DNA of 63,840 nucleotides from Octopus bimaculoides (taxonomy: Eukaryota): contig NC_069006.1 in NCBI RefSeq assembly GCF_001194135.2, forward strand, positions 2,274,623-2,338,462. Reading direction: 5' to 3'. The first letter of the stretch is position 1. Each line of letters begins with the position of its first letter. Below the pieces are notes generated by a model. That model made no database searches, was not told the DNA's origin, and worked only from the letters and a program-made list of their open reading frames with translations. Of this stretch, positions 23,310-48,049 are shown in pieces. The position numbers and the translations under genes were made by a program.

Positions 23310-24100
23310 GTTACCTGCGACCATTGTCTTCAATAACTTCACCTCTTCTTTTCACACTCAGGTGGTAATACCGTCCTATTTTGGTATCACCCATCACCCG
23401 TGTTACATCCCATAGTTATTCATTAGACCACCCCATACTGCCGGCCTTCTATCATATCCGATCAGGTGTAGTTCATTACATAACCCCATCCATCATTAAA
23501 TTCCTTTTTAATAGGTAACACTCTACTTCACTATAACCTTAATTTCCATAAATGTTTGATTTTCAATAGCCTTGTACCTGCTCCCTGAATACCCCTATAT
23601 TTCTGTATCACCTCTGTCTCCCTTCCGTGGTCTTTTACCATCAGCTAGAGATTCCTATACTCCCACCCTATACCAGATTGGTTTGTATTCTTTTATTTTT
23701 ATTTTATTTTTTATCCCCCCCCCCCATCACCCTTTCCGTTTCATTTATTTATCTTTTCTCCTTGCCTTATCCTTAATTGTCCTCTCCTTATCACTATGCC
23801 AAGCCTATCATAATAAATTATCTCCTACACTCCACTCCAGCCCACCTAGAATCTAGCCTAGCAAACTCCTTCTCACCTGAATCACTAACCTTGGATATCA
23901 TATTATACCCTTTTCTTAACCTAAACAGCCAACATACCTGCTCATTCTCCCATTTTACAGTTGGCCTCAACAGACTCTATCCACATCCTGGCTGTATTCT
24001 TGGGATATTCTTTTGTTTTGTTAAAATTACTTCTCATCTGATGATTAACGTCTTTTATAATAATGTAATGTTCTCATTCTTCCATTAAAAGGTTATGCAA
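23310..24100 (+). mobile_element. Penelope-like 3' remnant
   Basis: Peptide NSFSPESLTLD resembles the NTL.P.GLN terminus of Penelope-like elements; pyrimidine-rich UTR-like sequence follows. Confidence 0.4.
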
Positions 24101-24926
24101 GAAATGAGCTGACAATTTCTCCATCGTTTGTTCTTATTCACTTGATTATAAACCTCAAGGGAACTTAAAACTTGTCAGACACCTTAGAGCATACCAACAA
24201 CGTACAACTCAAAGTAATGTGTGCTTTGGACCAGCCCCTTAGGTGCTAAATTCTCAAAGGGTTGGTTTTCTCTGTGTAGACTACTAAAATATCTTATCAG
24301 ATATTTCAGCTCTCACCAACCATAGGCCTGAACCAGAGTGATTACCCAATCCTACCTGGTGCATACCTTTTCAAGTACCTGATTCTACCTGAATTCTCAG
24401 GTAAAATTTATTTATATATATATACACACATACATACATACATANNNNNNNNNNNNNNNNNNNNNNNNNNNNNNNNNNNNNNNNNNNNNNNNNNNNNNNN
24501 NNNNNNNNNNNNNNNNNNNNNNNNNNNNNNNNNNNNNNNNNNNNNNNNNNNNNNNNNNNNNNNNNNNNNNNNNNNNNNNNNNNNNNNNNNNNNNNNNNNN
24601 NNNNNNNNNNNNNNNNNNNNNCACACACACACACACTACCATTTGACAACCTGTGTAGGTGTTTTCACTTCCCTGGAACTTAGTGGTTCACCGAAAGTGA
24701 TTGATAGAATAAGTACCAGGCTTTAAAACAAAAATACAGGGGTCAAGTTGTTCACCTAAAATCCTTCAAAGCAGTGCCCCAGTATGGTCGCTATCTAATG
24801 ACTGAAACAAGTAAAAGAGAAACAGATGACTGTAGAAGCCCCGGAAACATGTAAAATGTTGAAGTTGAGTGAAGAAGGGAAACATCTTTCGAAATGAAAA
24901 CAAAAATAAATAAATGTGTGACTCAC

Positions 24927-25132
24927 TGCTGTCCCCAACCAAAAATTTCCTTCACCATAAAAAGTTATTCTTGTTATTTGATTCCAGTCCATTGGAATAA
25001 AAAAGGATGTATTTGATGTTCTAGAATTTCTTCTAAATGTAATATTAGTGTGCCCATAAAACCAAGATTCAAAAGAATAGTTATGATCGTCATTTGGCTC
25101 ACTGCGTATAACTTCAATAGTCCATGGTACCA
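24927..25132 (-). CDS. Gene L exon 4 (VPWTIEVIRSEP...GNFWLGTA; PLAT-like domain 2a)
   Basis: Acceptor cttacgttccag|, donor GCA|gtgagt, 206 nt, phase 1-0, open; paralog at 59611-59816. Confidence 0.9.
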
Positions 25133-25449
25133 CTGGAACGTAAGAGATAAAAACTGGACATCAGTAACAGCAAAATTTCAAAATTAATAAACTTAAAATG
25201 ATAATTATTTTTATAAAGAGGAAGATTTAAAGGGAAATTATAAGAACATGATTGGGAAATATTTATTTTCTCTGCTCTTCCACCATTTTTACATTTTGGT
25301 GAGACTGTGTAGGAGGAAGTTTGCTTCCCTGCCACATGGTTCTAAGCAAGTGTCTTGTACAACAGACTTTGGTCAACCAGAGCTTTGTGAGGGGATCTGG
25401 TAGATGGAAACTTAAGGAACGCCATGGTATATATATATATATATGTATA

Positions 25450-26130
25450 TATCATCATCATCATTTAACATCCGTTTTCCATGCTCGCATGGATTGAACG
25501 GTTTGACTGAAAACTGGTAGGCTGGTGAGCTACAACAGGTTCCAATCTAATTTGCCATGGTTTCTACTGTCAGATACTCTTCCTAACACCAACCACTCCA
25601 AGTAGTGGGTGATTTTTATGTGCATTTGGCATGGGTGCCAGTTATGTAGCACCAACATTAGCCATGACTGTGATCTTACTTGGTTTGACAGGTCTTCTTA
25701 GGCACTATATGTTGACAAAGGTCCAGGTCACTTCTCATTGCCTCAACGTTTGGAGATCATGCTTCACCGTCTTGTCTCATATCTTCCTGGGTCTACCTCT
25801 CCTCCAGTTTCCCTCCACAGTTAGAGGTTGACACTTCTTCCCACAGTCGTCCTCATCCATACACATCACATGACCATACAAGCACATTAGAGCGCCGCAT
25901 CTCAGGTGGCATCCGGTGCGCTCTCAGCGGCCCTGGAAAATCCGGGTCTTTTACACACCACAGCTGATGCCTCTTATGCCCAATTATTCTCTCAAGATGC
26001 TTACACTCTGTTGTGCATGCATACTGACATAGCACATCTAGCGATGCATACTAGCTTCATTTCTTTTAAGCCTTCACATGTCCTCAGCGATCACTTCTAC
26101 ATCATGTGATGTTATGTCCCCCTTCTATTT
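25450..26130 (-). mobile_element. RTE LINE 3' end with (GAT)n tail
   Basis: Degenerate GRPRK-type C-terminus and the catgc…ggaaaacggatgttaaatgatgatg tail shared with many short copies. Confidence 0.7.
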
Positions 26131-27315
26131 CGTCAAAGGCTTCAAGTAAAACATCTCTAAATCTCTGTCCATTCGCAGCATCTTTAAGCTTCCAGACCCT
26201 TCTCCTCTAAGCTGGTCATCCATTTAGCCCTGATCCCGAATGTTAACAGATTAATCTGTTCTTTAGCACAATCTTCTAACATAGAGAAAAAGGGATATGA
26301 ATAAATTTTAACTAATAAAGTTTACATTAATAAAAACAGTGAAATGTCTGTCAGTTTCTTAGTCAAGTTAGAGAATGCTGATGAGATGCAATAGACTGAA
26401 ACATATCTGTGGGTATCTAATCCTTTAACATGGATTAGATATTCCCTAATCACCTAAATTAACTTCTTAATTTTTTGAAATTTTTTCCCACTTTCTTTAA
26501 ATACTGCCAATTGTGAATTGCAAAAGAATTTTGTTTTAATTTCTCTAGTCAATTCAGAAAATTTCACTTAAGACTTTTTACATGTGACATTCAGTACATC
26601 ACTTCTTAATTTGTTTCATACAAATTCATGCCATTGGTATCTTTGAGTTATCTCCCTTAGCTAATATTTTTGCCCCAAAATTAATTATACAGAATATACT
26701 AACTCAAAATTATTATAACTGATTTACTATTTGTAAAAATCATTATTAGTCGCAATAACTAAACTATCCTAATGAGGTCTAACAGATTGAAGTATAACCA
26801 TTGTTGTCCCCCTTGCCTGCAAATCAAGACCAGTCTTTCTTTCTTGATAATCATTTAAATTACTTTGAGAAATTTATTCCAATCTCTTAAAATTATCTCC
26901 CCTTTTCCTTAACAGTTGCCAATGATTGGACTTAGAGTTTTCCTTTCTCTATCTAAACAAGAACTTGCAAGGAATTTAAGAAGGTTTTTCATACATGAAC
27001 CCTTAAATTATTTATGCAAGATCTTAAACTCAGAGTAACATTACTGCTTTAGCCATTTAAAAAAATATTACTTTTATATCCATTTTCATATGTCAACATT
27101 AGTTGGAAAAGTTATTGAAAATTTCAAATAATGATTTGTGGTTGAGATATGATATTGATTTTATACCTGTTTGTCTTTCTCATTACTGACTACACAACTG
27201 TGAATTGAACCACTAAGCATAGAATAATATGTCGTTCATGGGGATTGAATGGCAGCAGTAAGATTTGAACTCCTTTTTAGTTGAGCACACTAATCTCATA
27301 ACCCTTATTATTCCA

Positions 27316-27346
<31 letters not shown>

Positions 27347-27433
27347 CAACCAAAACAATTCCTTAATAAGTTGAAAAGAAGAAAAACAACCAAAAACAAA
27401 AACCAAGAAAGAGCCCTAAGGCAAACAGCTTAC

Positions 27434-27524
27434 TTTTCATTAATTTGATAATTGTGTCATTACAAAAAGTCTTCCCGCATTTGCCAAAATACATTTCTTG
27501 AAGATCATCGTTTTGAACGGACAC
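27434..27524 (-). CDS. Gene L exon 3 (VSVQNDDLQEMYFGKCGKTFCNDTIIKLMK; domain 1b)
   Basis: Acceptor ttatcttag|, donor A|gtaagc, 91 nt, phase 0-1, open; paralog at 56852-56942. Confidence 0.88.
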
Positions 27525-27735
27525 CTAAGATAAGATAAATAAACAAAATTAACAGCAACAGATTATTTAAAATAGATTAATAATGATGTTGATGATGATG
27601 GTGATGATGATGACATTGATGATGATGGTGATGATGATGATGATGATTAAGAGGGTGATGGTTAAGATGATGGTAGAATGTTTATAATGTACAGTCAGTA
27701 CTTTGTTTCTCAGTTTAAGATCAGTTTGGAGTAGT

Positions 27736-27782
<47 letters not shown>

Positions 27783-28136
27783 TATCCAGGGCTTAAATAC
27801 TGAACTTCTGTACCTTTGACCTTTACATTGTCAAAGCAAAAGGATTAAATCCAATAATACCAAAAGCAACAAAAATACTCTCACACCTTGTGCCTCCCTA
27901 ACGAAAGAGAAACATCTACAGTCTTGTTTATACAAAGTTCCTCATGCATGAATAAATTATAAAGCATAACAAAAACCCAAATTTAATCAATAAAAAATTG
28001 TTCCAAAACACATTCCCATAACAACATATCTAAAACTGTCAATTTATTTATCTATCTGTTTGTCTGTCTTTCTCTCTATCTCTCCCCCCCTCTCTCTCTA
28101 CATATGTATGTATATATATATATATATATATATATA

Positions 28137-29636
28137 GTTTTAGGGAAAATAACCAAGTTTCAAGAACTCATCGATGAAAATCCACTATCACATATAGAAA
28201 AATTAACAATTAAAAGCACAATAAATGAGTATAATATAAAGCAAAGTAAATATAAGATAAATATAATAAAATGATTACACGTGTTTCATAACTAATTTTC
28301 AAATAGAAAGGAAATTTTAATCGATTAAAATCAATTGAAATTATCGAAAATTAAATTCTATTCAAAAATATAGCTAATCGCCAGATCTTAAGTAGAACAA
28401 TAATTAGATATATATATCTCAACCAACAATAAGTACCAAATGAATTAATATGAAATACTTATTTTATAAAGATAGAAAAANNNNNNNNNNNNNNNNNNNN
28501 NNNNNNNNNNNNNNNNNNNNNNNNNNNNNNNNNNNNNNNNNNNNNNNNNNNNNNNNNNNNNNNNNNNNNNNNNNNNNNNNNNNNNNNNNNNNNNNNNNNN
28601 NNNNNNNNNNNNNNNNNNNNNNNNNNNNNNNNNNNNNNNNNNNNNNNNNNNNNNNNNNNNNNNNNNNNNNNNNNNNNNNNNNNNNNNNNNNNNNNNNNNN
28701 NNNNNNNNNNNNNNNNNNNNNNNNNNNNNNNNNNNNNNNNNNNNNNNNNNNNNNNNNNNNNNNNNNNNNNNNNNNNNNNNNNNNNNNNNNNNNNNNNNNN
28801 NNNNNNNNNNNNNNNNNNNNNNNNNNNNNNNNNNNNNNNNNNNNNNNNNNNNNNNNNNNNNNNNNNNNNNNNNNNNNNNNNNNNNNNNNNNNNNNNNNNN
28901 NNNNNNNNNNNNNNNNNNNNNNNNNNNNNNNNNNNNNNNNNNNNNNNNNNNNNNNNNNNNNNNNNNNNNNNNNNNNNNNNNNNNNNNNNNNNNNNNNNNN
29001 NNNNNNNNNNNNNNNNNNNNNNNNNNNNNNNNNNNNNNNNNNNNNNNNNNNNNNNNNNNNNNNNNNNNNNNNNNNNNNNNNNNNNNNNNNNNNNNNNNNN
29101 NNNNNNNNNNNNNNNNNNNNNNNNNNNNNNNNNNNNNNNNNNNNNNNNNNNNNNNNNNNNNNNNNNNNNNNNNNNNNNNNNNNNNNNNNNNNNNNNNNNN
29201 NNNNNNNNNNNNNNNNNNNNNNNNNNNNNNNNNNNNNNNNNNNNNNNNNNNNNNNNNNNNNNNNNNNNNNNNNNNNNNNNNNNNNNNNNNNNNNNNNNNN
29301 NNNNNNNNNNNNNNNNNNNNNNNNNNNNNNNNNNNNNNNNNNNNNNNNNNNNNNNNNNNNNNNNNNNNNNNNNNNNNNNNNNNNNNNNNNNNNNNNNNNN
29401 NNNNNNNNNNNNNNNNNNNNNNNNNNNNNNNNNNNNNNNNNNNNNNNNNNNNNNNNNNNNNNNNNNNNNNNNNNNNNNNAGTTATGAAACACGTGTAATC
29501 ATTTTATTATATTTATCTTATATTTACTTTGTTTTATATTATACTCATTTATTGTGCTTTTAATTGTTAAATTTTCTATATATGATAGTGGATTTTCATC
29601 GATGAGTTCTTGAAACTTGGTTATTTTCCCTAAAAC
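28137..29636. repeat. ~157-bp inverted repeat flanking a ~1-kb N gap
   Basis: 28137-28293 is the near-exact reverse complement of 29480-29636. Confidence 0.85.
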
Positions 29637-30719
29637 TATATATTTTATATATATTTTATCTATAAAGCTCAATGTAATTTTAATTTTTTATAAATTGGTT
29701 TTAATTGAGTTTTTACCTGTAATTTTGGATTTTGTCCCTAATATTATTATTATTATATATATATATATATATATGTATACATATATATAAGGGCAAGATT
29801 GAGGGATTCAAGTGTAGCAAGTTAGTAAGCTTCAAGCAGTCTGTGGCATGTAGAGAAAACAAAATGTGGAGAGTGTGTGGTCAGGAAGAATAACAATTTA
29901 TTTTTATATACTTCATGGTAGGCAACTAGCGTTGTTCTGAATGTGAATAAAGATTCAAATTGAAGTAGTGGAACAGTTAAAATCCAGGCTACATATGTTT
30001 CTTATCTGGCTGATCTTCCAATATAATTATTATGCAGAGATGGGTATGCAGGTAAGCTATTCATCAGGCCCAAAATACCTTAATTATATGAAAGTTACAT
30101 TGTCGTTTAAGAATCCAAGTTAATTCATCAAAGATCTTAGTTGAAATGAGTGAAGCCAGAACAGCAAAATCAAAAAAACAAAGGATTGAAGAAATAAAAT
30201 GATTAAGAAGTAAAATGTGCATCAATGTCTGTGCCCATTTGCACACTCTCACAGGCAAAAAGGTAAACATAAAAGAGACCACCAAGAAAAGGAAATATGT
30301 AACAAAAATGCCATAATGTAATGGTTATGAATATACAGAAAAGATTAACGTACAGAGGATGTAGGAGAATTAGCCAAGGAATTATCAAGGTGAGAAACTA
30401 TTATTTGTAACTTAAGAATGTGTTACATAACTTATCTTTACAGTTAAGAACAAGGTCATTTCGTTCATTAATGCAGTTACTGCATCATATAATGGAAAAA
30501 AGTTCTGCAATGCAGAGATGGCATTTTTTTTCAGAACTAATATATGGTTTAGCATGGGTAGCAATGGACTACTTTATACTTCATAAAACTGAGTAAGGTT
30601 TTAGCTTATGAATGAGTCTAGATTGAGATGTACTGTTAGTTTTTGCTATATACATATAGTTTACTGTTTTGTTATAGTTAGGATCAACAGAAATATTATT
30701 CTAGTGAGAGATAAATATC

Positions 30720-31141
30720 ATTTAATCTTTGTTACTTTGTGACTTGTTTCAGTCTAGTCATTAAATTATGGCCATGCTAGAGCACCACCTTAAAGGGGTT
30801 AGTCAAACAAATCGACCACAGGGCTTATTCTTTAACGCCTAGTACTTATTCTACCAGTCTCTTTTTGCTGAACCGATATGTTACAGGGACATAAACAAAC
30901 CAACATTGGTTGTCAAGTGATGTCAGGGCAACAAACACAGACACACCCACACACATAGATGCATATACATATACATACGACAGTCTTTTTTCAGTGTCTG
31001 TCTACCAATTACACTCACAAGATTTTGGTTGGCCCAAGGCTATAGAAGAAGAAGCTTGCCCAAAGTGTCACACAGTGGGATTGAACCTGGCACCATGTGG
31101 TTGGGAAGCAAGCTTCTTACCACACAGCCATACCTGCACCT
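30720..31141 (-). mobile_element. SINE family B
   Basis: Reverse-complement match to the family B head, core and tail. Confidence 0.8.
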
Positions 31142-31315
31142 ATACACAAAATTTGAAAAAGCGCTTCTAATAGTTTCATGCAGTAGAGATACAATAATTT
31201 GGCAGTTTTATATAACATAACACATGTCTCCATGCAATCTTTGAAACATGTTATATAAATCTGCCAAATAATTGTACCTCTAAGGCATGAAACTATAAGT
31301 TGGTGTTTTTAAAAT
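31141..31315. mobile_element. ~175-bp foldback MITE in intron 2 (orthologous copy at 55001-55180)
   Basis: Arms 31185-31218 and 31248-31281 pair with 3 mismatches, and pairing extends outward imperfectly; TA-like ends. Confidence 0.6.
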
Positions 31316-31330
31316 TATTGCATAATAAGT

Positions 31331-31367
<37 letters not shown>

Positions 31368-31413
31368 ATATGTGTGCATGTATGTGTGTGCGTGTGCATA
31401 TTAATTTCCTTAC

Positions 31414-31607
31414 CCCATCAACATCACTGTTATCAAATTCTGCAAAACCTGGCTTTGTTGTATTGTCTAATTCAAATTCAGTGTTGAAACATTTCTGTGC
31501 CTTTTTACTTGAAATGTTTACATATTCCACCTTGTCCAAAGAAATGCGAACAGAATTGAATTCCTTTAAAGAACAAAGGGTCATGTTCCACATTGTGGCC
31601 TGGGTAA
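31414..31607 (-). CDS. Gene L exon 2 (end of signal peptide, TQA|TMWNMTL...DVDG; repeat domain 1a)
   Basis: Acceptor tattttccag|, donor GGG|gtaagg, 194 nt, phase 1-0, open; paralog at 54680-54912. Confidence 0.88.
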
Positions 31608-32264
31608 CTGGAAAATAGTTGGAAAAAAAAAACAAGTTATCAAATTTTTTTAAAACATCAAAATTCTTTTACAATGTGACTAGTTGTACTGGTATTCTAT
31701 TACTGGTTACAGCCGGAAGCTGTGGGCATGTCCCATCCCAGTTATACAAGGAAAATCAGAGTAAGGTGAAGGTGTGGCTGTGTGGTAACAAATTTGCTTT
31801 CTAGCCATGTGGTTCCAGGTTGATTCCCACTTCCTTGCACCGTGAGCAAGTGACAGAAATGAACTCTACAATACACTGCCACAGTAGCGCCACCTACCAA
31901 ATTCCACTCTTTCACCATTTAGTATTCAGATTATTCGATTAAGTGTAATACTTATTTATTCTCATTGTTTTGAATTAATCATGCATTCTTTTGTAGCTTC
32001 AAGGTTTCGATGATTTGATTGCTTATTTTTAGAATGCCATTGCATGGTAGGTGTGAGAGGCTGGATATGGCCAGCTGGAATATTTGAACTGGAAGGCTGG
32101 TTTGAATGGTGAAGTATTAAAATTCTGTTGAGTTGAGGTTATTGTTCAAGATACTAATAAATTTGAAACCAAGTGGAAAACACAGGTGAGGGAAACAAAG
32201 TTCTTAACCATACACAACCAACCATGATGATTGCACAAATAAATAAATAATTAAGAGAACTTAC

Positions 32265-32319
32265 ATAATAAACAGGGGAAGATTATGACTAAAATACTCC
32301 AAAATGGAAGACCCAGCAT
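32265..32319 (-). CDS. Gene L coding exon 1: signal peptide MLGLPFWSILVIIFPCLL (phase 1 end)
   Basis: ATG at 32319-32317, hydrophobic 18-mer, donor T|gtaagt at 32264. Upstream acceptor ccatttctccag| at 32347 (whole exon 32265-32346). Paralogous exon at 50680-50734. Confidence 0.85.
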
Positions 32320-32727
32320 GGCAGGAGATGGAAAGAATTGGTTAGTCTGGAGAAATGGTGATTTTTCCTTTTTCCTTTTTAAAGGTCTTTTGCAAAGAAT
32401 GAGGAATTTCTATATCAAATATTCTTAGAGATGAATCGTCATTAATTCCTTTTCATTTATCTGTTCAACTATTTTATAAACTGCAAAACACAAAAAACAG
32501 AATATTGTCAAATGTCAGTTGATATTCTAAACCATTGAATAATTCTTGTTTTATAATTCTTACCATGTCAAATTCTTGTGCTTGCGGGTTGTGGAGATTA
32601 CGAAATTGAAAGTTCTGGACAATATTTAATGCTTTTTTTAATGTTTGGACACATTATTATTGCATCAAAGCTGTTCTAATATATAAACTGGCTTCTAGAA
32701 CATTGCTAAAAACTGAATAATTGATAT

Positions 32728-32764
<37 letters not shown>

Positions 32765-33419
32765 TTATGTATGCATGCTTGTTCAGTTTTATTTCAAGAT
32801 TTCTTGTCAATACAGAAGGAACTGGTTTCTAACCTAGATCCAAATCTTTTTCACTGGAATTTCAACATTAACAACAGGGTATTTTTGTACGTATGTATGT
32901 ATGTATGTATGTATGTATGTATGTATGTANNNNNNNNNNTGCATGCTTGTTCAGTTTTATTTCAAGATTTCTTGTCAATACAGAAGGAACTGGTTTCTAA
33001 CCTAGATCCAAATCTTTTTCACTGGAATTTCAACATTAACAACAGGGTATTTTTGTACGTATGTATGTATGTATGTATGTATGTATGTATGTATGCATGT
33101 ATGCATGTATGTATGTATATATATGTGCAGATTTGTATGTTTTGCTTTGTGTATATATTCTCATGCGTATAGCTGCATATCTAGACATGCTCATATATAC
33201 CTTTAAAGGATAAACTTCTGGAGAGTTTTACAGATTTTTACTGTTCCAGTGATGGCTTGGATCTGTAGTCATCAAATCAGCTTTCTGCTTTCTGGTTTAT
33301 GTATGTATGTATGTATGTATGTATGTATGTATGTATGTATGCATGTATGCATGTACACATGCATATAAAGCATCCATTACAGTCTTAGAGTGGTTAGCTT
33401 TAGGAAGGGCTTACCAGCT

Positions 33420-33860
33420 CCAGTCAAACATTCCAACCATGCCAGCATGGAAAGCAGTCCTTAAATGATGATATATATATATATATATATATCATCATAC
33501 ATACATACTGACATTGTACATCTAGCGAAACATACCAGCTTCATTTCTTTCAGGCATTTGCATGTCCCCAGCATGCCCAGCCCATGTTTACACCCAGGCA
33601 TCATACAGCCTTCCTTTCATTCTGAGGGAAAGACCCTTTTTTACCAGCAGAGGGAGAAGCTCTCTGAGCTTTGCTCAGCCTATTCTTATTCTAGCAACTA
33701 GGCTTTCAGAGCATCCACCACCACTGTTGGTTTGGTCACCTAGATAGCTACAGCTTTCCCCACTGGCATTTGATGGAATCTATTTTCTGTACATTAACCT
33801 TCCTCTGATATTTCTGCACTTCTTATACACCATTTTTATATGTCAAACAGTATTCTATAC
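33420..33860 (-). mobile_element. RTE LINE fragment (mirror of 49600-50100)
   Basis: Antisense ORF ILATRLSEHPPPLLVWS is shared with 49769-50149. Confidence 0.8.
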
Positions 33861-34149
33861 TAATAAAATTAGTAAAACTAAAACAATTACTATTAATTGA
33901 CCTGATGAACTAATTATAAAATGCCAACATTTTAAATACAAATCTTTTCTGCACTACAAACACATAGAGTTATACTTATCCTTATAACTACAGTTACTAA
34001 ATTATAACCCTAGTTTTAATACTCAGAATATATTCAATATATTTTAATAAGTGTATCCTTACATCTTAATGAAAATCTTCCATACCTTAAACTACAATTT
34101 AACTCTACTAATTTAATAATTATTATATTCAAATTTAAACACTTCTATT

Positions 34150-35881
34150 TTTCAAAAAATTCTCCCTTTTTAAATGAAATTCCTCTATGGATTACACAAG
34201 TGACATTTGATGGTCTTCAAATAGCGACTTATATAGGGGCATAGAAGACAGCATGGAGGTGAAGTGGCAGCATCAGTGGGGCCAGCATTAGGATTAGAAC
34301 GTACACAGGGAGGGGATGGCATTATTAACCAAATGTTAGCATCAGAATATGGCAGCAGAGATAAAGTAATATCTTGGCCCCCATGCCATTCTTCGTCTTT
34401 AGAAATTTTCTCCTGTGTTAGTTGACCTCTCAGACTAATTCTGGCCGAATATGACAATGGAAGGGGGAGAAGGGAGATAGGGGATACGAGTTAGCTCCCA
34501 TAGAATATGACGGAGGAGGAGGACAAAGCGAGGACGAAGGCTGAAAGACTGTTTCCAAACCATTTAGGCAGAAGCCTGTTTGAAGCACACCATGTAATTC
34601 CTCATAACTTCTTGTTTATGTTTTGGAATTTAAAAAAAAGTTTAGCAAATTTGTATTCTATATATGGGAATTCATATTACAGTGAAAAACAAATTTGTTT
34701 TTAATTTTTCGATTTTGTTTTTAAAAATCTCATTTTAAAAAACGGACAGTCCAAACTTTTGGCTTAAATCCCAGCAATGTGGACCATTAAATGTGTTTAT
34801 GAGGAGAACGATATTGAAAAACATCTATACTTCAGAGTGACAAACGAGGAGGGTGTTAGGTTGTCGTGTGATGTGTTAAAAACAACAGTCAAATAGCCAC
34901 TAAGCATACACAACATTTTTTTTCCCTGTCGTTTTTGCATAAACGTATGAATTCTCGTGCGTGGAATACAAATTCGTAAAATATTTCTGAAAGTTCCAAA
35001 AAATATAAAAGTTATGAGACTGGCTGTTATGGGAGTGGTGGAGTGAATAAGAGGAGAGGGCGCAGGTTTGCGATGGAGGTAGAGGGGGGAACCGGATGAA
35101 ACGCATTAACTCTGGCAGTGAGGCTCGGCTTGGAGTGTGCGGGTTAGGAGGCGATGAAAGTAGGCAGGTTGTTACGGGAGTGGTCTGGTGTATAAGGGGA
35201 CGAGTAAGACCAATTCCGACTGAATCCGACGAGAGAAATGGGAGAAGGGAGATAGGGAAATATGAGTTTGTTCTCTTGAAATGTGACGAACGAGGTGGGC
35301 AGAGCAAGGACGAAGGCTGATAAAATGTTTCAAAATCGTTGAGGTGGAATTCTGTTTTAACCATTCCATGTAATTCCTCAAGACTTTTTTTTTTCACTTT
35401 TTGTAAGTTTCTGGAAAGTTTTTGTATCCTATACACAGGAATTCATATTACAGTGAAAAACAAATTTGTTTTGAATGTTTCGAATTTATATTTCTTTAAA
35501 TCACATTTTAAAATATGGACAGTCCAAACTTTTGGCTTAAATCCCAGCAATTGACCATCAAATGTGTTTAATGGGGAGAACGATATTGAAAAAACATCAA
35601 TACGCCAGAGTGACAAACAAGGAGGGAATCAGGAGATCGTGAGATGTGCTAAAAACAACAGCCAAATGACCCCTAATCACACGCAAAATATTTTTCCTTT
35701 TGCTTTTGCATAATTGTATGAACTCTCGCGTGTGGGGCACAAATTCGTAAAAGATTTCAGAAAATCCTGAAAAATAGAAAAAAATATGAGGGGTTATATG
35801 GAATGATTAAAGCAGAATTTTGCTATCATTTAGCCATGGGGGGGGGGGAGTGGTCTCTTGGTCAATCGCTGCATGGCCCTA
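34150..35881. mobile_element. hAT-like non-autonomous/composite element end with an internal ~450-bp direct duplication (mirror at 44985-46130)
   Basis: Terminus TAGGGCCATGCAGCG (minus strand, 35867-35881; TAGGGTCATGCATCG at 44985) fits the hAT (T/C)A(A/G)NG start. 34540-34990 is repeated at 35330-35790. Confidence 0.5.
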
Positions 35882-38169
35882 AAACTTTTTTTTATTTAAT
35901 TTTATTTTCATCCGAACACCAACGTTGAATCTAACCAGGCCATCATTATGACAATGATGGTCAAGTGAGAGNNNNNNNNNNNNNNNNNNNNNNNNNNNNN
36001 NNNNNNNNNNNNNNNNNNNNNNNNNNNNNNNNNNNNNNNNNNNNNNNNNNNNNNNNNNNNNNNNNNNNNNNNNNNNNNNNNNNNNNNNNNNNNNNNNNNN
36101 NNNNNNNNNNNNNNNNNNNNNNNNNNNNNNNNNNNNNNNNNNNNNNNNNNNNNNNNNNNNNNNNNNNNNNNNNNNNNNNNNNNNNNNNNNNNNNNNNNNN
36201 NNNNNNNNNNNNNNNNNNNNNNNNNNNNNNNNNNNNNNNNNNNNNNNNNNNNNNNNNNNNNNNNNNNNNNNNNNNNNNNNNNNNNNNNNNNNNNNNNNNN
36301 NNNNNNNNNNNNNNNNNNNNNNNNNNNNNNNNNNNNNNNNNNNNNNNNNNNNNNNNNNNNNNNNNNNNNNNNNNNNNNNNNNNNNNNNNNNNNNNNNNNN
36401 NNNNNNNNNNNNNNNNNNNNNNNNNNNNNNNNNNNNNNNNNNNNNNNNNNNNNNNNNNNNNNNNNNNNNNNNNNNNNNNNNNNNNNNNNNNNNNNNNNNN
36501 NNNNNNNNNNNNNNNNNNNNNNNNNNNNNNNNNNNNNNNNNNNNNNNNNNNNNNNNNNNNNNNNNNNNNNNNNNNNNNNNNNNNNNNNNNNNNNNNNNNN
36601 NNNNNNNNNNNNNNNNNNNNNNNNNNNNNNNNNNNNNNNNNNNNNNNNNNNNNNNNNNNNNNNNNNNNNNNNNNNNNNNNNNNNNNNNNNNNNNNNNNNN
36701 NNNNNNNNNNNTATATATATATATATGAGGTCGGGTGTAAACAAAATATTAACTGAGCATGAAGTTGATCTATCATGGTTAAAATGGAATTCTACTTACG
36801 TGTGCATCTGTTTATTTATCGTTTTTTTTTTCTCATCTGTCTCTTTTGTTGCTACGCTGTTGAATACGTGGGTGAGAATTTGGTGCAGTTGCTTCGGTTG
36901 TTGTGATATATTTACTGTGTCGTCATATCATTAAAAAAAATTAAATGGAAACAAATTCGACCGTATATAGATTTACTTTCAAAGCAATGTTCCAGTAAAT
37001 CACAAACCTCTTTCTATTCTAAATATAAATCATTCTGCATCTGTTTGACCTCATTTAAAGCTGCACGTTGTGACTCTGACGGGTCTTCTGTTGCTGTATA
37101 ATTAGATCACTCGACCACAGTGTGACAGACGATGCTCAGAGGAAGTGGGTAGGTGTGTGCAAGGTGGTTGAATTGATATGCAGCTCTCTTATGTTTACTG
37201 AAGAATTTCTTTTAGAATTTCTTTGCTCTAATTATTTTAAATCGTCAACAAATTACTTAAAGGGCTGTGGCAATTGTATGAAGGGGAGTTGGCATTATTA
37301 GCCAAATTTTGGAATCAAAATATGGCAGCAGAGAAAGAGTAATATTTTGGCCCCAAAACCATTCTTCGTCTTTAGAAATGTTCTGCTTTAGTTGAGTCTC
37401 TCAGATTTCTTCTTGCTGACCTAATAAATTGCAGCTATGAATGCAAGTATAAAGTTACAAAACATTTTCAAAAAATATCAAGGAATGACTTGGAATACAA
37501 GAACAGTTGAAATTGGTACTGCTGAAAATTTTTGCATCTTCACATTGTGGAGAGTGAACATTGGGACGAAATTCAAATGTATATGTGAATGATATCTCCA
37601 TTTCTTTAAAACTTTTATTTCTTAAACGATGATTGGCATCGTATCATAAATTGATCCCCATAATTGAAACTGAAATCTACATTAAATCTCTGAATCCACA
37701 TGAATTCAGAAGGGATCGTCATGGGCTGCGAGTTTGGACATAGAAAACTGAAGATAATCAAGTTATAAAGTTAATTCGATAAAGTTGGACAGCCGGGTTT
37801 AGATTGTATTTCTGTCTTCGGAACTGCTGACCGGTTAGCGTTGATAAGGATCTCCATAGCATCACTTTTGTGAAGTTAATTGAACTTATTTTTATATGGT
37901 TTATTTCCCAATATGTTATTATCATCGTGTTTGTATCCCTCAAAAAAGAAAACAAAAATATTATCGAAAAATTGGATCCCTACAAATGCCATTTTCTTCA
38001 TAGGTAATTCCATCAGGTTTAGCTGATTTCTTTCCTTTCTACTGATTCCATTGAAGAACACAAGAGACAAAGCTTGCAATTCACAGAGGAACTGAAAGTT
38101 CTAACAATATCATCAGTTGTATATGCACAGCAAACTTACTTGACCCGTTTGTAATAGCATAACCTTTAT

Positions 38170-39620
38170 TAAGATGATATTCACCCCTGGATATTAGATT
38201 AACCCGTTGACAATAGCTTAACCACCTAATATTAATTTAATCCTTGAATATTAGATTTACTGCTTAGCATTAGATTAACCCCTGAACATTAGATTAAACC
38301 CTTCCGTGTAGACAACATTTGGCGTAAGTCTTCTTACATTTTCATTATGACGTCTACTTGTTGCTGATCTGGTAGATTCTTTTTGATCAGCAAATATTTT
38401 AAGATTCACTGGATCCCCAACTCTACTAAGAGCGACATATAGTAAGTACGGTCGAAGGCATGTAGATGCCGCACTTAGAAAGGCTTTGCCCTTGACTTTT
38501 GTTAATAGACATCGCAAAAGAAGGTCTCACTGGAAATTGGCGTCTTTTCAAAGTAAAGGGCAAATCGGTATGAGATGTTTGCAGAATAATGCAAGGAATC
38601 AAAAGTGTGCATCCTGCATCAACACCAGTTAGTTCACTTGCAGTTATTATATTATCTGACACTATAACGTGCGCCGTTGCAGTGCCCAATTCTCTGATCT
38701 AAGTTTCTTAGCAACATTATAGGAACACCCGTTTTTGATTTGATAATGTGGGGTGGCATGACACTTATATTAAGAGAATTCAGAAATTCAGGAAGATAGA
38801 AGGCAAATTGTTGATCTTCTGCAACGGAATCAATGCTCCTCAGAGTATATGTCTCACCTGGAAATTTCTGGATTATGTGGTAATTTAGATTGTCAAATTC
38901 TTTATTCTTTGTTGTTCATATTGCTCGTGATGATAACTGTTAGGCATTGTTAAAATTAACCTCTAAATCTTCATAAACATGGTTGATCAAATCTTCCTTG
39001 CTGTTGACTTGAAATTACCGAGGAATCTCTATTACATCATCAAATAATTGTCTTTGAACATTGGGGATTCTTCCATTACCAATTTGCAATAACCAAACAG
39101 AATGATATTCCAGTCGAGCTTGAGAGGTGTTATCATTAATCTGAGACAGGTTTGCACTCTCATATTAGTGGTGAGATGAAGTACTTCTCATTCGTGCCAA
39201 ATTACGGATCTTTTCAAACATGCTCCAATTAGAGAAGACCCTTGTGTTTTTCGAACCACTGGAAGCATTTGACGGAAATCACCACCTAAAATTATCAATT
39301 TGCCGCCAAAGATCAAATCGTTGTTCATTATGTCCTTCAGGGTTCGATTCAGCGCTTCAAATATATAACGATGACACATGGGTGCCTCGTTCCAAACAAT
39401 CAAGCGTGCACCGAGATATTCGCCCATAACTTGGTGACAGTTTGTCGTGGATAGCGGGTATAAATCCAAATTTTTAATATTTCTCTGAATATGGACGAAC
39501 TGTTTTTTTATTTGAATCAAGCACGATGAGATTTCAATTCAAGCAAATTGTTTCAACAATTTCTTCAAAACGATTTCAGCATAAACTTTCGGAAAATATG
39601 CTCAAAAAGAAACAAAAAAT
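38170..39620 (-). mobile_element. Helitron Rep/helicase (PIF1-type) remnant
   Basis: LIVWNEAPM…FGGKLIILGGDFRQMLPVV, RRQFPVRPSFAMSINKSQGQSL and LYVALSRV helicase motifs in broken frames. Confidence 0.9.
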
Positions 39621-40962: not shown

Positions 40963-41571
40963 CACATGCACATGCATAGGTAAAGTATACTCTGTTGTGG
41001 TTTTGCATTTTCCTGACCTAAAATATGTCTAGTCATTGTTCGAATCCTGGAGGTTTTCATTGAACGATTTTTTGTATTTTTAATTACATCCTCTTTAAAT
41101 TCGCATACTTCTACGCATAGTTTATGTATGTATGTATGTATGTATGCATCTATCTGTCTATTTATACGTGAAGGCGTAGCAATATGAAAAGAATTTAGTT
41201 TCTCAAAAACATGGTCCCAAGTTCAATCCCCAGCGTTGCAACTTGAGTAAATGTATTTTACAGTTGCTTCGGGTCGACGCCTTGTTTGTGGATGTGGAGG
41301 ATAGAAACTGAAAGGGGCCTGCCACATTAACACACACATACATACACACAGAAACACACACATACGCGTTGTGTGTGTTTTTATGTGTGTACATATGTGT
41401 GTACATATGTGTAAATGTGTGTATGTGCGTGCGTGTGCGTGCGTGTGCGTGCGTGTGTATACGTGGGTGTGCGTGCGTGTGGATGTACGACGGTCTTCTT
41501 TCAGTATTTACGTCCCCAAATGAAGTCATTCGACAAACGAAATCGACAGAATATGCATTCTATCTATGATG

Positions 41572-41623
<52 letters not shown>

Positions 41624-41624
41624 A

Positions 41625-41670
<46 letters not shown>

Positions 41671-41672
<2 letters not shown>

Positions 41673-42299: not shown

Positions 42300-42932
42300 N
42301 NNNNNNNNNNNNNNNNNNNNNNNNNNNNNNNNNNNNNNNNNNNNNNNNNNNNNNNNNNNNNNNNNNNNNNNNNNNNNNNNNNNNNNNNNNNNNNNNNNNN
42401 NNNNNNNNNNNNNNNNNNNNNNNNNNNNNNNNNNNNNNNNNNNNNNNNNNNNNNNNNNNNNNNNNNNNNNNNNNNNNNNNNNNNNNNNNNNNNNNNNNNN
42501 NNNNNNNNNNNNNNNNNNNNNNNNNNNNNNNNNNNNNNNNNNNNNNNNNNNNNNNNNNNNNNNNNNNNNNNNNNNNNNNNNNNNNNNNNNNNNNNNNNNN
42601 NNNNNNNNNNNNNNNNNNNNNNNNNNNNNNNNNNNNNNNNNNNNNNNNNNNNNNNNNNNNNNNNNNNNNNNNNNNNNNNNNNNNNNNNNNNNNNNNNNNN
42701 NNNNNNNNNNNNNNNNNNNNNNNNNNNNNNNNNNNNNNNNNNNNNNNNNNNNNNNNNNNNNNNNNNNNNNNNNNNNNNNNNNNNNNNNNNNNNNNNNNNN
42801 NNNNNNNNNNNNNNNNNNNNNNNNNNNNNNNNNNNNNNNNNNNNNNNNNNNNNNNNNNNNNNNNNNNNNNNNNNNNNNNNNNNNNNNNNNNNNNNNNNNN
42901 NNNNNNNNNNNNNNNNNNNNNNNNNNNNNNNN

Positions 42933-43310
42933 GTAGTTGTTGTGTGCCTAAAGCACAGTGGTGTATTTTTAGATCGCGAAATGTTGGGCATTTTCATCAA
43001 GTCAGAAGAGGATACTTCTTCGAAATATTTTTCAAAAACCTCACTTCTCGTTTTTGAAAGAGAGTTTTTCAACTTTTCAATCAATTTCAAGCAATCACCG
43101 GCTGTCGTGCCTGGACGCTGTAAGCTACGTGCCATTGGCTCACATACCTCAAATATATCCCCAGCGATTTTAATGCCGAACAAAATGGAAGCTTTGCCAG
43201 ATTGTTTTTCAGCAACACCAGTTTCAACTGTTCTTTTATCCCAAGTCATTCCTTGATATTTAAAAAATATTGTTTTGTAACTTTATACTTGCATTCATAG
43301 CTGGAATTTA
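42933..43310 (-). mobile_element. hAT-type transposase remnant
   Basis: FGIKIAGDIFEVCEPMARSLQRPGTTAGDCLKLIEKLKNSLSKTRSEVFEKYFEEV resembles the C-terminal half of hAT transposases. Confidence 0.7.
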
Positions 43311-44023
43311 TCATGTCAGCAACAAGAAATCTGAGAGACTCATCTAAAACAGAAAAAAACATTTCTAAAGACGTAGAATGGTTTTGGGGTCAAGATATTA
43401 CTCTTTCTCTGCTGCCATATTTTGATGTCAAACTTTGACTAATAATGCTAAATCCCCTTCATACAATTTCCATAGCCTTTTAAGTCATTTGTTGACGATT
43501 TAGAATAATGTAGGCGAAGAAATTCTAAGAGAAGTTCTTCAGTAAACATAAGACAGCTGCATATCATTTCAACCACTTTGCACACACCTACACACTTCCT
43601 CTGAGCATCATCTGTCCCACTGTGGTCGAGCGAACTACTGGTATAGCAGCAGAAGACCCATCAGAATCACAACATGCAGCCTTAAATGAAGTCAGAATAA
43701 TGGGAATCGTTTTTACATTTTGAATAGAACTTTGTGATTTACTGGAACATCGCTTTGAAAGTAAATCTATATACGGTCGAATTTATTTCCATTTACTTTT
43801 CCTCAATGACCTCATGACACAGTAAATATATAACAACAACCAAAGCAACTGCACCAAATTCTCACCCACATATTCAACAGGGTAGCAACAAAGGAGACAA
43901 ATGAAAAAAAAACAAAACAATAAATAAACAGATGCACACGTAAGCAGAATTCCTGCCACAAATTTAACCATGATATATCAACTGCATGCTCAATTGATAT
44001 CTTGTCTACATATGCGTATATAC

Positions 44024-44056
<33 letters not shown>

Positions 44057-47000
44057 GCTAGATAAATGTATGTATATATATATANNNNNNNNNNNNNNNN
44101 NNNNNNNNNNNNNNNNNNNNNNNNNNNNNNNNNNNNNNNNNNNNNNNNNNNNNNNNNNNNNNNNNNNNNNNNNNNNNNNNNNNNNNNNNNNNNNNNNNNN
44201 NNNNNNNNNNNNNNNNNNNNNNNNNNNNNNNNNNNNNNNNNNNNNNNNNNNNNNNNNNNNNNNNNNNNNNNNNNNNNNNNNNNNNNNNNNNNNNNNNNNN
44301 NNNNNNNNNNNNNNNNNNNNNNNNNNNNNNNNNNNNNNNNNNNNNNNNNNNNNNNNNNNNNNNNNNNNNNNNNNNNNNNNNNNNNNNNNNNNNNNNNNNN
44401 NNNNNNATATATATATATACTTACATATATATAACACTTTCGCTAGGTGTAAAAATCACCTAAGTGATATTAGATATCCGTAGAACTTACTGGTTTTTAT
44501 TACGTGTATCAATAACAAAGTTTTCCAATAGGTAAATAAATACAAATAAACAAAGAGTTTATTAATTTATAAATATAAATAAGAAATGGAGACTGCTGTA
44601 ATTTGTAAGATGTGCCATTTGTTTGTATAAAATATTTAAATTGAATTGAATTTATAATTGTTCAATTCATTGTTTTGCTTTCCATTTCTTAAATATATAT
44701 ATATATATATACAAAACATTTTTATATTATGTTTTCTCATTCGAATGCCCGTTCGCTAGTCTTATTGTGTTTATGTATTGTGTTTTCATTTTTTAATTTT
44801 TGAACGCTTTCAGTTTTTTCTTCTCCCAGCGTTTTAATGTTCCCTCTGTTCTCTTATGACATTTCCGCTGTTTTAAATGCTTGCACTCGCACCCACAATG
44901 ATCCTTTGGAAACTTCACTCACATTCCTTCATGAACACATTATTCATTTTCCTACTTTCGGATAAAAATAAAATTAGCAGGTTTTAGGGTCATGCATCGA
45001 GTGACCTAGAGACCCGCATGGCTGAACGGCGGCAAAAATTCTGCTTTAAGCATTCCGTATAACCCCATAATGTTTCTTTTTAGTTTTGGGGATTTTCAGA
45101 AATCCTTTACGAATCTGTGTTCCACACATGTCTGTCACTCTGAAATAATGATGTTCTTCAGTATCTTTCTCCCAATAAACATATTTAATGGCCCATTGCT
45201 GGGATTTAAGCCAAGGATTTACTTAAATTGGCTTCCATCGCCTACCCCCACCGACATCCAACTCCCACTACCAAGGTTCATATTTTTTTTACCCGGCTTT
45301 AAGCATTTCATATAACTCCTCATAGCTTTTTCCTAGTTTTTGGAATTTTCTGAATATTTTAACGAATTTGTGTTCCACACACGAAAATTCATGTTTATGG
45401 AAAAACAAAATGTAAAAATATTGCGTTATTAGGGGTTATTTGGTTGTTATTTTCAGCACATCTCACGACCACCTGATACCCTCTTTGTCACTCTGAAGTA
45501 GTGATGTTGTTCAATATCGTTCTCCCCATGAACACATTCAATGGTCTATTGCTGGTATTTAAGCCAAACTTTTGGACTGTCCGTATTTTCAAATGATTTT
45601 TTAAAACAAAATCGAAAAATTAAAAATAAATTTGTTTTTCACAGTTGTATGAATTCCAATATGTAGAATAAAAGCTTGCAAAACATTTTTAAAAATTCCA
45701 AAGAATAAAATGCTATGAGGAATTACATTGCGTGCTTAAAACAGAATTCCGCCAAAACGATTTTGAAACATTTTATCAGCGTTGTTGACGATTTAAAATA
45801 ATATAGGTGAAGAAATTCTAAAAGAAATCCTTCAGTCCACTTATTCCCCCCGCTACTCTCGTAACAGCCAGTCTACCTCCATCACCATCTTTCCTCCTGC
45901 CACCAACCGATCCCCACTGCTAACCTTCATATCGTTTCACCTGGTTCCCACCTCTCCCTCCATCACCAACCTTTACCCCAACCATCATCCTCTCCCAGTC
46001 TAAATCCTCATGCTGATCGAAATGATGCCCCCAGTTCACCCCCAAGCTGTCTTTTCTGCCCCTATACAAATCGCTATTTGAAGACCATCAAATGTCACTT
46101 GTGTAACCCATCACAGGAGCTTCGTTGGCATTACTAAGGTCCAGGCTGAAAGTTTTTCAAATTGGACATGCAACCAACGTCACTTCAGCTCCCACATACT
46201 TCCCGAGGCCGAACCTTGCTCTGATGTTCAGATTCATGTCAAGGATTTTGCAGCCGCCGTCCACATATTCATGACTGCAAACCGGTCATCAACACTTCAG
46301 TCCATTCGGTTATTGTATATCATTATGTATGCCTTACCAGAAGTCCTTGATAAACATGTGTTTGGTTAAAATTATGATCAAAGATACTCACTCATGTTAA
46401 AGCAATGGGCATACATACACAACTGTGCCCCACTGAGTCGTAAAAAAGTTTTTTCACAGAAGTGGGAGAAAAAGTTAAAGAAATTCACAAAAGTCGGTTT
46501 GTTTCCTCATGACTTTTTTTTGTTTTAAATGTGTGTTTTTAGATGAAAATTTCAACAAATACATTTTAGAGTGTGTAGATTACAATTATATCTGAATTTG
46601 ATATGAGAATAAAATATAGTGGAATAGTACACATACGTCTTAAAACACATCAAGTCTATTGCTCACCAAATTCCAAGATAATCGAAGTTTCACACCATTT
46701 TTGCTCTCTATAGATATCATGGAGAACGAAAATGAGAGAAAGAACTCAAGAAATCTATATTGTGTGCTGATATAGCTACATAATGTTTCTTATTCTGCTG
46801 CAATCACTGAGGCTATGTTATGAAGAGAAGGGACTTAACTGCGTAGATCTCTATGTAACTGATACCAGGTGTTAGCTGATCATTGTATGTTTTCGTCACT
46901 GCCCATCCATTGTTTAACCATTGTGACAGCACTCTTGCTATCTGCTAGTTATGCTTGTGTTGTGTGTCTAGTCTGATGTCTATCTGCCATTTGTCTATAA

Positions 47001-47329
47001 TTGCTAAAATGCACTGAATATTTTGTGGTGGCTTTGCTCAGAAAAAAAGCAAATAGAAGATACAATTGTTGTTAGATCCAGTTCCACACAAAATCTTGAA
47101 TGGTGACATTTTTTTTATGGCATCGGTAATATTCCAGTGAGTAGCGATTATCATGTTGAACTGGTTTCTTTTCCTGGCTATAGTCATCCGGGGTTTTTTC
47201 TTAAATATTCCTGCTTCACAAATGAAAATGTAGAATGTCAACTTTGAAAAATGTGACGAAATGATACAAGACAGGTGTGTGCTGTGCCATGTTGAAGTAC
47301 CTTAATACCGAAGATAGTAAATGAAGTCG

Positions 47330-47530
47330 TGAGCTGACAGAATTGTTAGCTGGATGAAATATTTAGCAGCATTTCACTCGTTGCTATGTTCTGAGTTCAA
47401 ATTCTGCCGAGGTCGACTTTACCTTTCAACCTTTCGGGGTCGATAAAATAAGTATCATTTGAACACTGAGATCGGTGTAATCGACTCGTCCCCTCCCCCA
47501 AAATTGCTGCCCTTGTTGAAACATTTGAAA
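47330..47530 (+). mobile_element. tRNA-derived SINE, third family (related copy on minus strand at ~20030-20220)
   Basis: B-box gagttcaaattc followed by gaggtcgactttacctttcaacctttcggggtcgataaaataagta; approximate reverse-complement match at 20030-20220. Confidence 0.65.
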
Positions 47531-48049
47531 CAATTATATTAAAGATAGTAATGACTATATATTACTCAGGTGTAAATACCTAGGTATAAGTAGAAAACTA
47601 TTCAAAGTTCAGGAGATATAGATACAGAGAGTGGTACTAGGAATATAGGGGAGTAAATGTATTGATATAGGAAACTATTTACTATATTATGGGCTGCAGA
47701 TATAATAGAAATAATACATTTCTAAATCTCTCAGAGAGATTTATGCAGTAGCAGCACAATAAAGTGATAGTATGTTGTCAACTTAATGTGACAGTCTCCA
47801 TGAAAGGGAAGAATGCTACTGTTATTTAGCCCTAGGAAACACCGTTTCTTGTTGGACTTGACACAGAAAGCTTACTTATATAATTTTGTTCGTTATCTTT
47901 AAGATTTATAGGAGGATGTCATGGTAGGAAAGTTTCTGTTCTTTTATCAAAATTAAGGGATTTCACTATATTATTTCCTTGTTTATTGATACTAAATAAA
48001 TCCGAATTTTGTGCCAGTTTGTAATCGTTATTTAGTTCTTTATAAGATA

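Follow-up and report, generated by a model that had tools for sequence, protein, structure and literature searches.

In the venom and reproductive genes known for 'accelerated exons', such as those of snake PLA2, conotoxins and abalone lysin, dN lies clearly above dS and the signal peptide is conserved. Interlocus gene conversion acts on the primate red/green (LW/MW) opsins (Shyue et al. 1994; Teshima & Innan 2008, reviewed in PMC3924837). In these genes, paralogous introns resemble each other at least as closely as orthologous ones, the exons sort by orthology, and they create a 'peak of divergence', based on two known spectral-tuning residues, amid homogenised introns. Colobine RNASE1 duplicates also combine coding divergence with homogenised non-coding DNA (PMC3924837). 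Their tree topology varies with the part of the gene that is used, and adaptive charge-changing substitutions have been verified by experiment. Finally, the GOT1 paralogs of Tigriopus californicus encode a conserved metabolic enzyme (PMC3728101).

We analyzed a window of 63,840 nt from Octopus bimaculoides that contains two paralogous genes, hereafter L and R. As in the opsins, the non-coding sequences of these paralogs are as close as those of orthologues, or closer, and the exons group by orthology; as in RNASE1, the topology depends on the part of the gene considered. The opsin exons, however, differ by a few per cent, whereas the exon islands of L and R reach 25-32%. The octopus pair also differs from the opsins in that one copy has an omega of at least 1 and in that most of the non-coding DNA is star-like and less clearly concerted. 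RNASE1 differs from the octopus pair in the experimental confirmation of its adaptive changes, and GOT1 in being a conserved enzyme, whereas L and R encode a lineage-restricted, fast-evolving surface protein. With the accelerated-exon genes the locus shares exons that exceed introns, an omega at or above about 1, secreted or surface proteins and a tandem family organization, but it departs from them in an omega of only ~1, a high dS, a signal-peptide exon that is itself an island of divergence and a constrained L copy. The pair adds an invertebrate case to a pattern described chiefly in primate opsins and RNASE1, and its exon islands are unusually deep.

The composition of the window is eukaryotic (~35% G+C, 13 runs of N, microsatellites and transposon remnants). 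Comparing the window with itself revealed a large inverted duplication, delimited by a colinear chain of blastn HSPs. The L arm (22697-37528, minus strand) includes the 5' half of the L gene and ~5 kb of upstream sequence, and the R arm (43206-62160, plus strand) includes the 5' half of the R gene. L is LOC106880589, on the minus strand, and R is LOC106880587 (XP_014786078.1, P0001), on the plus strand; they stand head to head with 18 kb between their first exons, and the window holds no third copy. The L gene extends leftwards to ~4.4 kb, and the remainder of R lies outside the window. Comparing the ORFs of the two arms by blastp was uninformative because the introns match in all frames. A word-indexed protein search with L exons 2-5 returned zero matches, even though the RefSeq protein of L (P0013) was in the searched collection. 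Relatives were instead found by an exhaustive profile search with the pair of exon-2 peptides, and a family-profile search then named them. A literature search with the LOC identifiers found nothing.

Exons 1 to 5 of L correspond to P0013, every residue matching. On the minus strand, exon 1 (32265-32319; 55 nt coding) consists of an ATG and an 18-codon signal peptide (MLGLPFWSILVIIFPCLL) and forms the N-terminus of P0013. It is followed by exon 2 (31414-31607; 194 nt), with AG/GT sites and a match to P0013, exon 3 (27434-27524; 91 nt), with the motif CGKTFC, exon 4 (24927-25132; 206 nt), which encodes VPWTIEVIRSEPNDD...NFWLGTA and matches P0013 exactly, and exon 5 (22773-22872; 100 nt). In R, on the plus strand, exon 1 (50680-50734) is a 55-nt ATG...GT segment with the signal peptide MLLLPYWSIFLIISPHFI. 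Exons 2 (54680-54912; 233 nt) and 3 (56852-56942; 91 nt) present AG/GT sites and match P0001, exon 4 (59611-59816; 206 nt) is a 100% match to residues 155-224 of XP_014786078.1, and exon 5 (61982-62084; 103 nt) is the last in the window, the later R exons lying past its end. Exon 2 of R contains an extra in-frame segment of 39 nt (54845-54883) that is missing from L. In the five-exon models all ten exons are open in the same frame, with canonical AG acceptors and GT donors at matching places in the two copies, just as the initial annotation had described. Its gene model of five exons, on the other hand, was incomplete. A reading of exon 5 through to a stop was rejected: the annotated proteins show an internal donor at AAATG/GTAAG, beyond which P0013 continues (...CFLTN/DSTWKIEL), and at least five further exons follow. 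In L these lie between 4387 and 20991 on the minus strand, at ~20740-20991, 19483-19590, 17556-17798 and 16060-16161, with the last coding exon at 4387-4515; the positions are approximate, having been located by tblastn of P0001, P0002 and P0013 and mapped through 100% matches. They encode two more beta-sandwich domains, a TM helix and a cytoplasmic tail. The RefSeq model of R (XP_014786078.1) begins with an exon at 42981-43118, lacks a signal peptide and does not include 50680-50734. All 18 residues encoded at 50680-50734 recur at the start of P0018, the O. sinensis orthologue. The RefSeq annotation of R probably misses the true first exon.

The contrast between exon and intron divergence is genuine. 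The initial annotation had counted differences between L and R by hand, and its exon counts were exact: 66 of the 206 nt of exon 4 differ without any indel, only 29 of 68 amino acids are identical, six synonymous changes fall in the 29 conserved codons, and 14 of the 55 nt of exon 1 differ. Both exons exceed their flanks, as it had claimed, although these flanks are slightly less similar than had been judged by eye. Within 200 nt on each side of exon 4, 53 of 381 positions differ (13.9%; 21% in the 100 nt adjoining the acceptor and 8-13% in the remainder), compared to 32% in the exon (Fisher p=3.4e-7). Around exon 1, again with 200 nt per side, 28 of 392 positions differ (7.1%; range 4-10%), compared to 25.5% in the exon (Fisher p=1.4e-4). 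Exon 5 differs at 17 of 100 positions (17%), against 2.5% in its flank, measured on the upstream side only (Fisher p=1.5e-5). The general claim of higher divergence in exons than in introns is thus correct for exons 1 and 4 and for all aligned DNA taken together (25.2% in exons vs 13.6% in non-coding sequence; p=2e-13), but not for exon 2 (26% vs 24%; Fisher p=0.48) or exon 3 (22% vs 29%; Fisher p=0.19). Non-coding divergence between L and R is very uneven, from 1-5% up to more than 30% per 100 columns. Nevertheless, exon 4 presents the highest divergence among all 206-column stretches of the 6.3 kb of aligned paralogous DNA: none of the 4576 non-coding windows of this size reached 66 mismatches, the maximum being 58.

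We then compared the pair with its O. sinensis orthologues, LOC118768046 for L and LOC115224696 for R, which were fetched with their introns; by exons 4 and 6, R is most closely related to LOC115224696. Because both species carry L-type and R-type genes whose exons group by orthology, these sequences show that the L/R duplication predates the split of O. bimaculoides and O. sinensis. Informative sites in exons number 52 in favor of orthology, 7 in favor of concerted evolution and 4 others (26:2:1 in exon 4 and 8:0:0 in exon 1). The corresponding ratio in filtered non-coding DNA is 33:25:5, which differs from that of the exons (Fisher p=1.7e-4). The raw four-way flanks of 250 nt contained O. 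sinensis stretches that could not be aligned (distances of 0.4-0.6), and window-filtered columns were used instead. Over 1550 well-aligned non-coding columns, all six pairwise distances fall between 0.11 and 0.15, as in a star tree: with b and s denoting O. bimaculoides and O. sinensis, the paralogs are separated by 0.116 (Lb-Rb) and 0.148, and the orthologues by 0.111 (Lb-Ls) and 0.140 (Rb-Rs). The immediate flanks of exon 4 favor orthology (13:2), with a short internal branch.

Several tracts go further. In the most homogenised ones, the O. bimaculoides paralogs differ by 2-4%, compared to distances of 0.07-0.11 between orthologues. A recent conversion tract covers the 3' end of intron 4 and continues into the first part of exon 5 (22852-23114, minus strand; partner in R, 61740-62002). 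At the 3' end of this intron, L and R differ at 6 of 250 positions, whereas their comparison with the R orthologue of O. sinensis yields 27 of 246 and 23 of 246 (p=1e-4 and 1e-3). L and R are identical over two stretches of this tract, one of 122 nt (P ~1e-5) and one of 100 nt. The promoter and 5' flank of exon 1 (32320-32737, minus strand; partner in R, 50265-50679) are also homogenised, with 3-5% divergence between L and R. Upstream of this exon the paralogs differ at 10 of 243 positions compared to 24 of 249 (p=0.02), the Lb-Rb distance is 0.04 against 0.10 for Lb-Ls, the informative sites are four concerted and zero orthologous, and a perfect run of 86 nt is found at 32531-32617. These tracts show that interlocus conversion has homogenised non-coding DNA at this locus, and we infer the same process for the rest of it.

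Substitution rates in the coding sequence do not reproduce the signature expected of accelerated exons. For exon 4, maximum likelihood (GY94) yielded an omega of 1.06-1.11 between L and R, with dN of 0.46-0.49 and dS of 0.42-0.47, and a test against 1 gave 2dlnL of 0.02-0.06. Omega is 0.82-0.93 for exons 1-5, and the Nei-Gojobori estimates are 1.11 for exon 4 and 0.69 overall. The dS between paralogs (~0.35-0.47) is two to three times the non-coding divergence (K ~0.13-0.15). Synonymous counts of the NG86 type ignore the transition bias (kappa 2.5-4), which inflates pS about 1.4-fold; the likelihood estimates serve as one check on this dS and the codons that encode the same amino acid in L and R as another, the latter giving pS=0.30 against 0.116 in non-coding DNA (p=1e-4), a count itself somewhat raised by this bias. 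Lineage-specific rates were estimated from four sequences, using a four-taxon codon model with separate omegas for the L, R and internal (post-duplication) branches. The values were 0.42, 1.38 and 0.93, respectively, for exons 1-5 and 0.17, 1.64 and 0.95 for exon 4, and three ratios fit better than one (2dlnL=10.5 and 12.4, respectively). The L omega is significantly below 1 (2dlnL 9.2, exons 1-5), whereas those of the R and internal branches are indistinguishable from 1; for R, the estimates run from 1.38 in exons 1-5 to 1.64-2.03 in exon 4, with 2dlnL of 1.2-2.2 over this whole range. In none of these estimates was omega significantly above 1 (2dlnL at most 2.2).

The two copies are therefore asymmetric: purifying selection acts on L, and amino-acid change in R proceeds at the neutral rate or faster. 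Indeed, the L orthologues differ at 10 of the 68 residues of exon 4 (omega 0.16), whereas the R orthologues differ at 29 of these 68 residues and at 93 of 213 overall, with an omega of 1.4-2.0 and an intact frame. Neutral simulations with the local mutation spectrum indicated that the frame of exons 1-5 would stay open through ~164 substitutions with a probability of only 0.0007, and two exon indels were observed, both in frame, compared to 7.3 expected (P=0.024). We found no stops, frameshifts or lost splice sites in the ten exons, and a processed or decaying pseudogene was rejected. Since R combines fast amino-acid change with a conserved frame and conserved splice sites, its distal ectodomain points to a mix of constrained sites and sites that change adaptively or freely.

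The most probable explanation of the contrast is a pair of old paralogs in which the non-coding DNA was homogenised and the exons retain the older split. It would then be largely a mosaic of ages created by gene conversion and not in itself a signature of dN exceeding dS, since the omega between paralogs is ~1, the non-coding DNA of paralogs is as close as that of orthologues and the exons group by orthology. Some conversion of non-coding DNA around or before speciation would have produced the star-like non-coding tree, and some conversion after speciation in O. bimaculoides would have left the tracts that are 2-4% apart and include identical stretches of more than 100 nt. Homogenisation would largely have spared the coding exons, above all the signal-peptide exon 1 (55 nt) and exon 4 but also parts of the others, and they would persist as islands in which synonymous and non-synonymous divergence both exceed the intron level. 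Such islands could be maintained by selection for a functional difference between L and R, which would purge converted exons, or by dense mismatches that halt heteroduplex extension at exon edges; one or both of these processes may operate. The initial annotation had attributed the contrast to positive selection on ligand-binding surfaces, and had listed as refuting outcomes a corrected dN/dS of 1 or less, or introns made similar entirely by gene conversion with exon dS no lower than dN. Both outcomes were essentially obtained for the paralogs, since dS is close to dN and the non-coding distances between paralogs equal those between orthologues, and are lower in some tracts. The reading thus keeps partial support: positive selection may have acted in R, where omega is not significantly above 1 but the frame is kept, and a ligand-binding surface would be hypothetical in a protein that lacks any known domain.

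Pure diversifying selection would imply that the introns record the true age of L and R, shortly before speciation, and that exons 1 and 4 were accelerated. We consider this unlikely as a full account, while a role for positive selection in R, or in exon 4 along its post-duplication branch, stays a live minority reading. When exon 4 alone was forced to the depth of its own flanks, the loss of fit was not significant (p=0.105), and the internal omega became 3.1. The high omega of R in exon 4 and its many amino-acid differences between species are in line with this reading, as are the 48 of 52 orthology-supporting exon sites that fall in codons with amino-acid differences, and variability across the family peaks in the N-terminal exons of the ectodomain. 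However, forcing exons 1-5 to the relative internal-branch length of non-coding DNA was rejected (p=0.026 with a ratio of 0.11; p=1.4e-4 with the global ratio of 0.03), the L lineage is strongly constrained in exon 4, and diversifying change would hardly be expected to target a signal-peptide exon. Moreover, the tracts in which paralogs are far closer than orthologues require conversion in any case. Against the conversion mosaic, in turn, stand the strictly synonymous informative sites, which are few (4 for orthology, 2 concerted), and the fourfold sites (n=26), which do not show a deeper split of the paralogs. Relaxed constraint, with the R copy of one or both species drifting towards a pseudogene at an omega of ~1, appears very unlikely. 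The R omega of 1.4 does not differ from 1, nor does that of the paralogs, and the O. sinensis R orthologue has gained a coding exon, while neither cysteine of the CGxTFC motif survives in its exon 3 (L002 11654-11740, 17219-17308). Yet an open frame would be improbable under neutrality, all splice sites are intact, full-length ORFs are annotated in both species, and drift would not push exons past the divergence of neutral introns.

Orthologue dS (0.24-0.25) is also ~1.6-2 times the orthologue intron K, so it is possible that the non-coding yardstick is biased low by alignability or that exons mutate faster. In conotoxin and venom PLA2 genes, exon-confined mutation has been a matter of speculation, and error-prone repair or transcription-coupled mutagenesis focused on exons would raise both dS and dN above the introns. 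The L orthologues present a pS of 0.215 compared to 0.111 in non-coding DNA (p=0.004), although the former is an NG86-type count subject to the inflation described above and the latter rests on alignable DNA only; exon 4 has a dS of 0.40 against 0.12-0.13 in its flanks, and the internal-branch omega is ~1. Because exons 2 and 3 are no higher than their flanks and because the tracts with paralogs closer than orthologues would be left unexplained, we hold a mutational origin to be highly improbable. Most improbable of all is an assembly artefact, in which mis-assembled haplotypes or collapsed repeats would have created a false inverted duplicate with introns filled in by consensus. The assembly behind the window is a gapped one built from short reads, one of the 13 N-gaps of the window (42300-42932) lies on the axis of the inversion, and the chromosome-scale v2 record was built from the same contigs and so provides no independent check. 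In O. sinensis the L and R orthologues are in tandem on one strand, ~10.8 kb apart, and not head to head. That long-read assembly is nevertheless gap-free and carries L-type and R-type genes side by side with matching exon types, and many indels and private TE insertions separate the two O. bimaculoides copies. The doubt thus covers orientation only, and two genes are certain; the head-to-head arrangement across the gap may reflect a true inversion or faulty scaffolding.

If the exons do retain an older split amid homogenised non-coding DNA, a higher divergence of exons than of introns can be a misleading sign: at this locus it reflects mostly homogenised introns and only possibly adaptive exons, and paralog dN/dS or intron dating alone would therefore give the wrong history. 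The family of L and R is well suited to testing models of how neofunctionalisation proceeds under gene conversion.

The proteins belong to a family of 27 clusters found among 5.8 billion proteins, all from Octopus bimaculoides, O. sinensis or O. vulgaris except for one entry, and all members are annotated as 'uncharacterized'. The members are octopus-restricted single-pass type-I membrane glycoproteins. We detected no Pfam domain in single exons, in the spliced proteins or in any family member, and the search for sequence relatives in the PDB found none. An AlphaFold2 model of P0013 based on the family alignment (mean pLDDT 73.6, pTM 0.65) predicts a signal peptide, an all-beta ectodomain of ~4 sandwich domains, a TM helix (465-504) and a disordered tail. 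Foldseek returned local matches over 120-140 columns to the PLAT/LH2 sandwiches of lipases and lipoxygenases, with a probability of 1.0, E=0.03-0.3 and an rmsd of 4.4-5.4. With a structural match of weak E-value and no Pfam PLAT match, membership in PLAT/LH2 was rejected, and we regard this as a resemblance only. Variability across the family is highest in the N-terminal exons 1-4 and 6 (36-45% mean pairwise identity) and lowest in the membrane-proximal exons 7-9 (56-62%). The exon-2-type module occurs in eight copies in P0008 (3150 residues) and in two in P0006 (188 residues), and therefore appears to behave as a repeatable domain. As octopus-restricted surface glycoproteins that include a constrained copy and a fast neighbor, the family would be a reasonable candidate for cephalopod-specific recognition. 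A bolder and rather doubtful reading is that the R copy, and perhaps all of this octopus-only family of ~10 genes per species, represents rapidly diversifying cephalopod cell-surface receptors, with selection shielding the variable exons from conversion and an omega of ~3 for exon 4 after duplication. Candidate roles would then be innate-immune, self/non-self or contact-chemosensory.

The window also contains repeats. Between the two genes, fragments of a PIF1-like helicase on the minus strand (38655-39538; Pfam PIF1 E=7e-25, Pif1_2B E=1e-17) are probably the remnant of a Helitron-type transposon. Remnants of reverse transcriptase and of mariner-type transposase lie in intron 4 of R (60153-60551 and 60977-61480), and another reverse-transcriptase remnant lies upstream of R exon 1 (48304-48633); all of these are private to R. 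A mariner tail is common to L (~23120-23300) and R (~61560-61740) and is older than the last homogenisation. The distal introns of L include three copies of a dispersed repeat of ~385 bp (920-1301, 6989-7374 and 18995-19387; 90-92% identity), which is also present in the O. sinensis locus, and a distal L intron contains three tandem units of ~450-490 bp (10316-12332; 80-85% identity). A 176-bp inverted duplicate (28118-28293 and 29480-29654; 97% identity) flanks the N-gap at 28481-29479, with one copy 187 nt to the left of the gap and the other directly after it, and looks like an assembly artefact of the gap edge. Finally, the same short-period microsatellite is found in intron 5 of L (20444-20600) and in the intergenic spacer (41559-41672), the two aligning in many registers at 88-97% identity.
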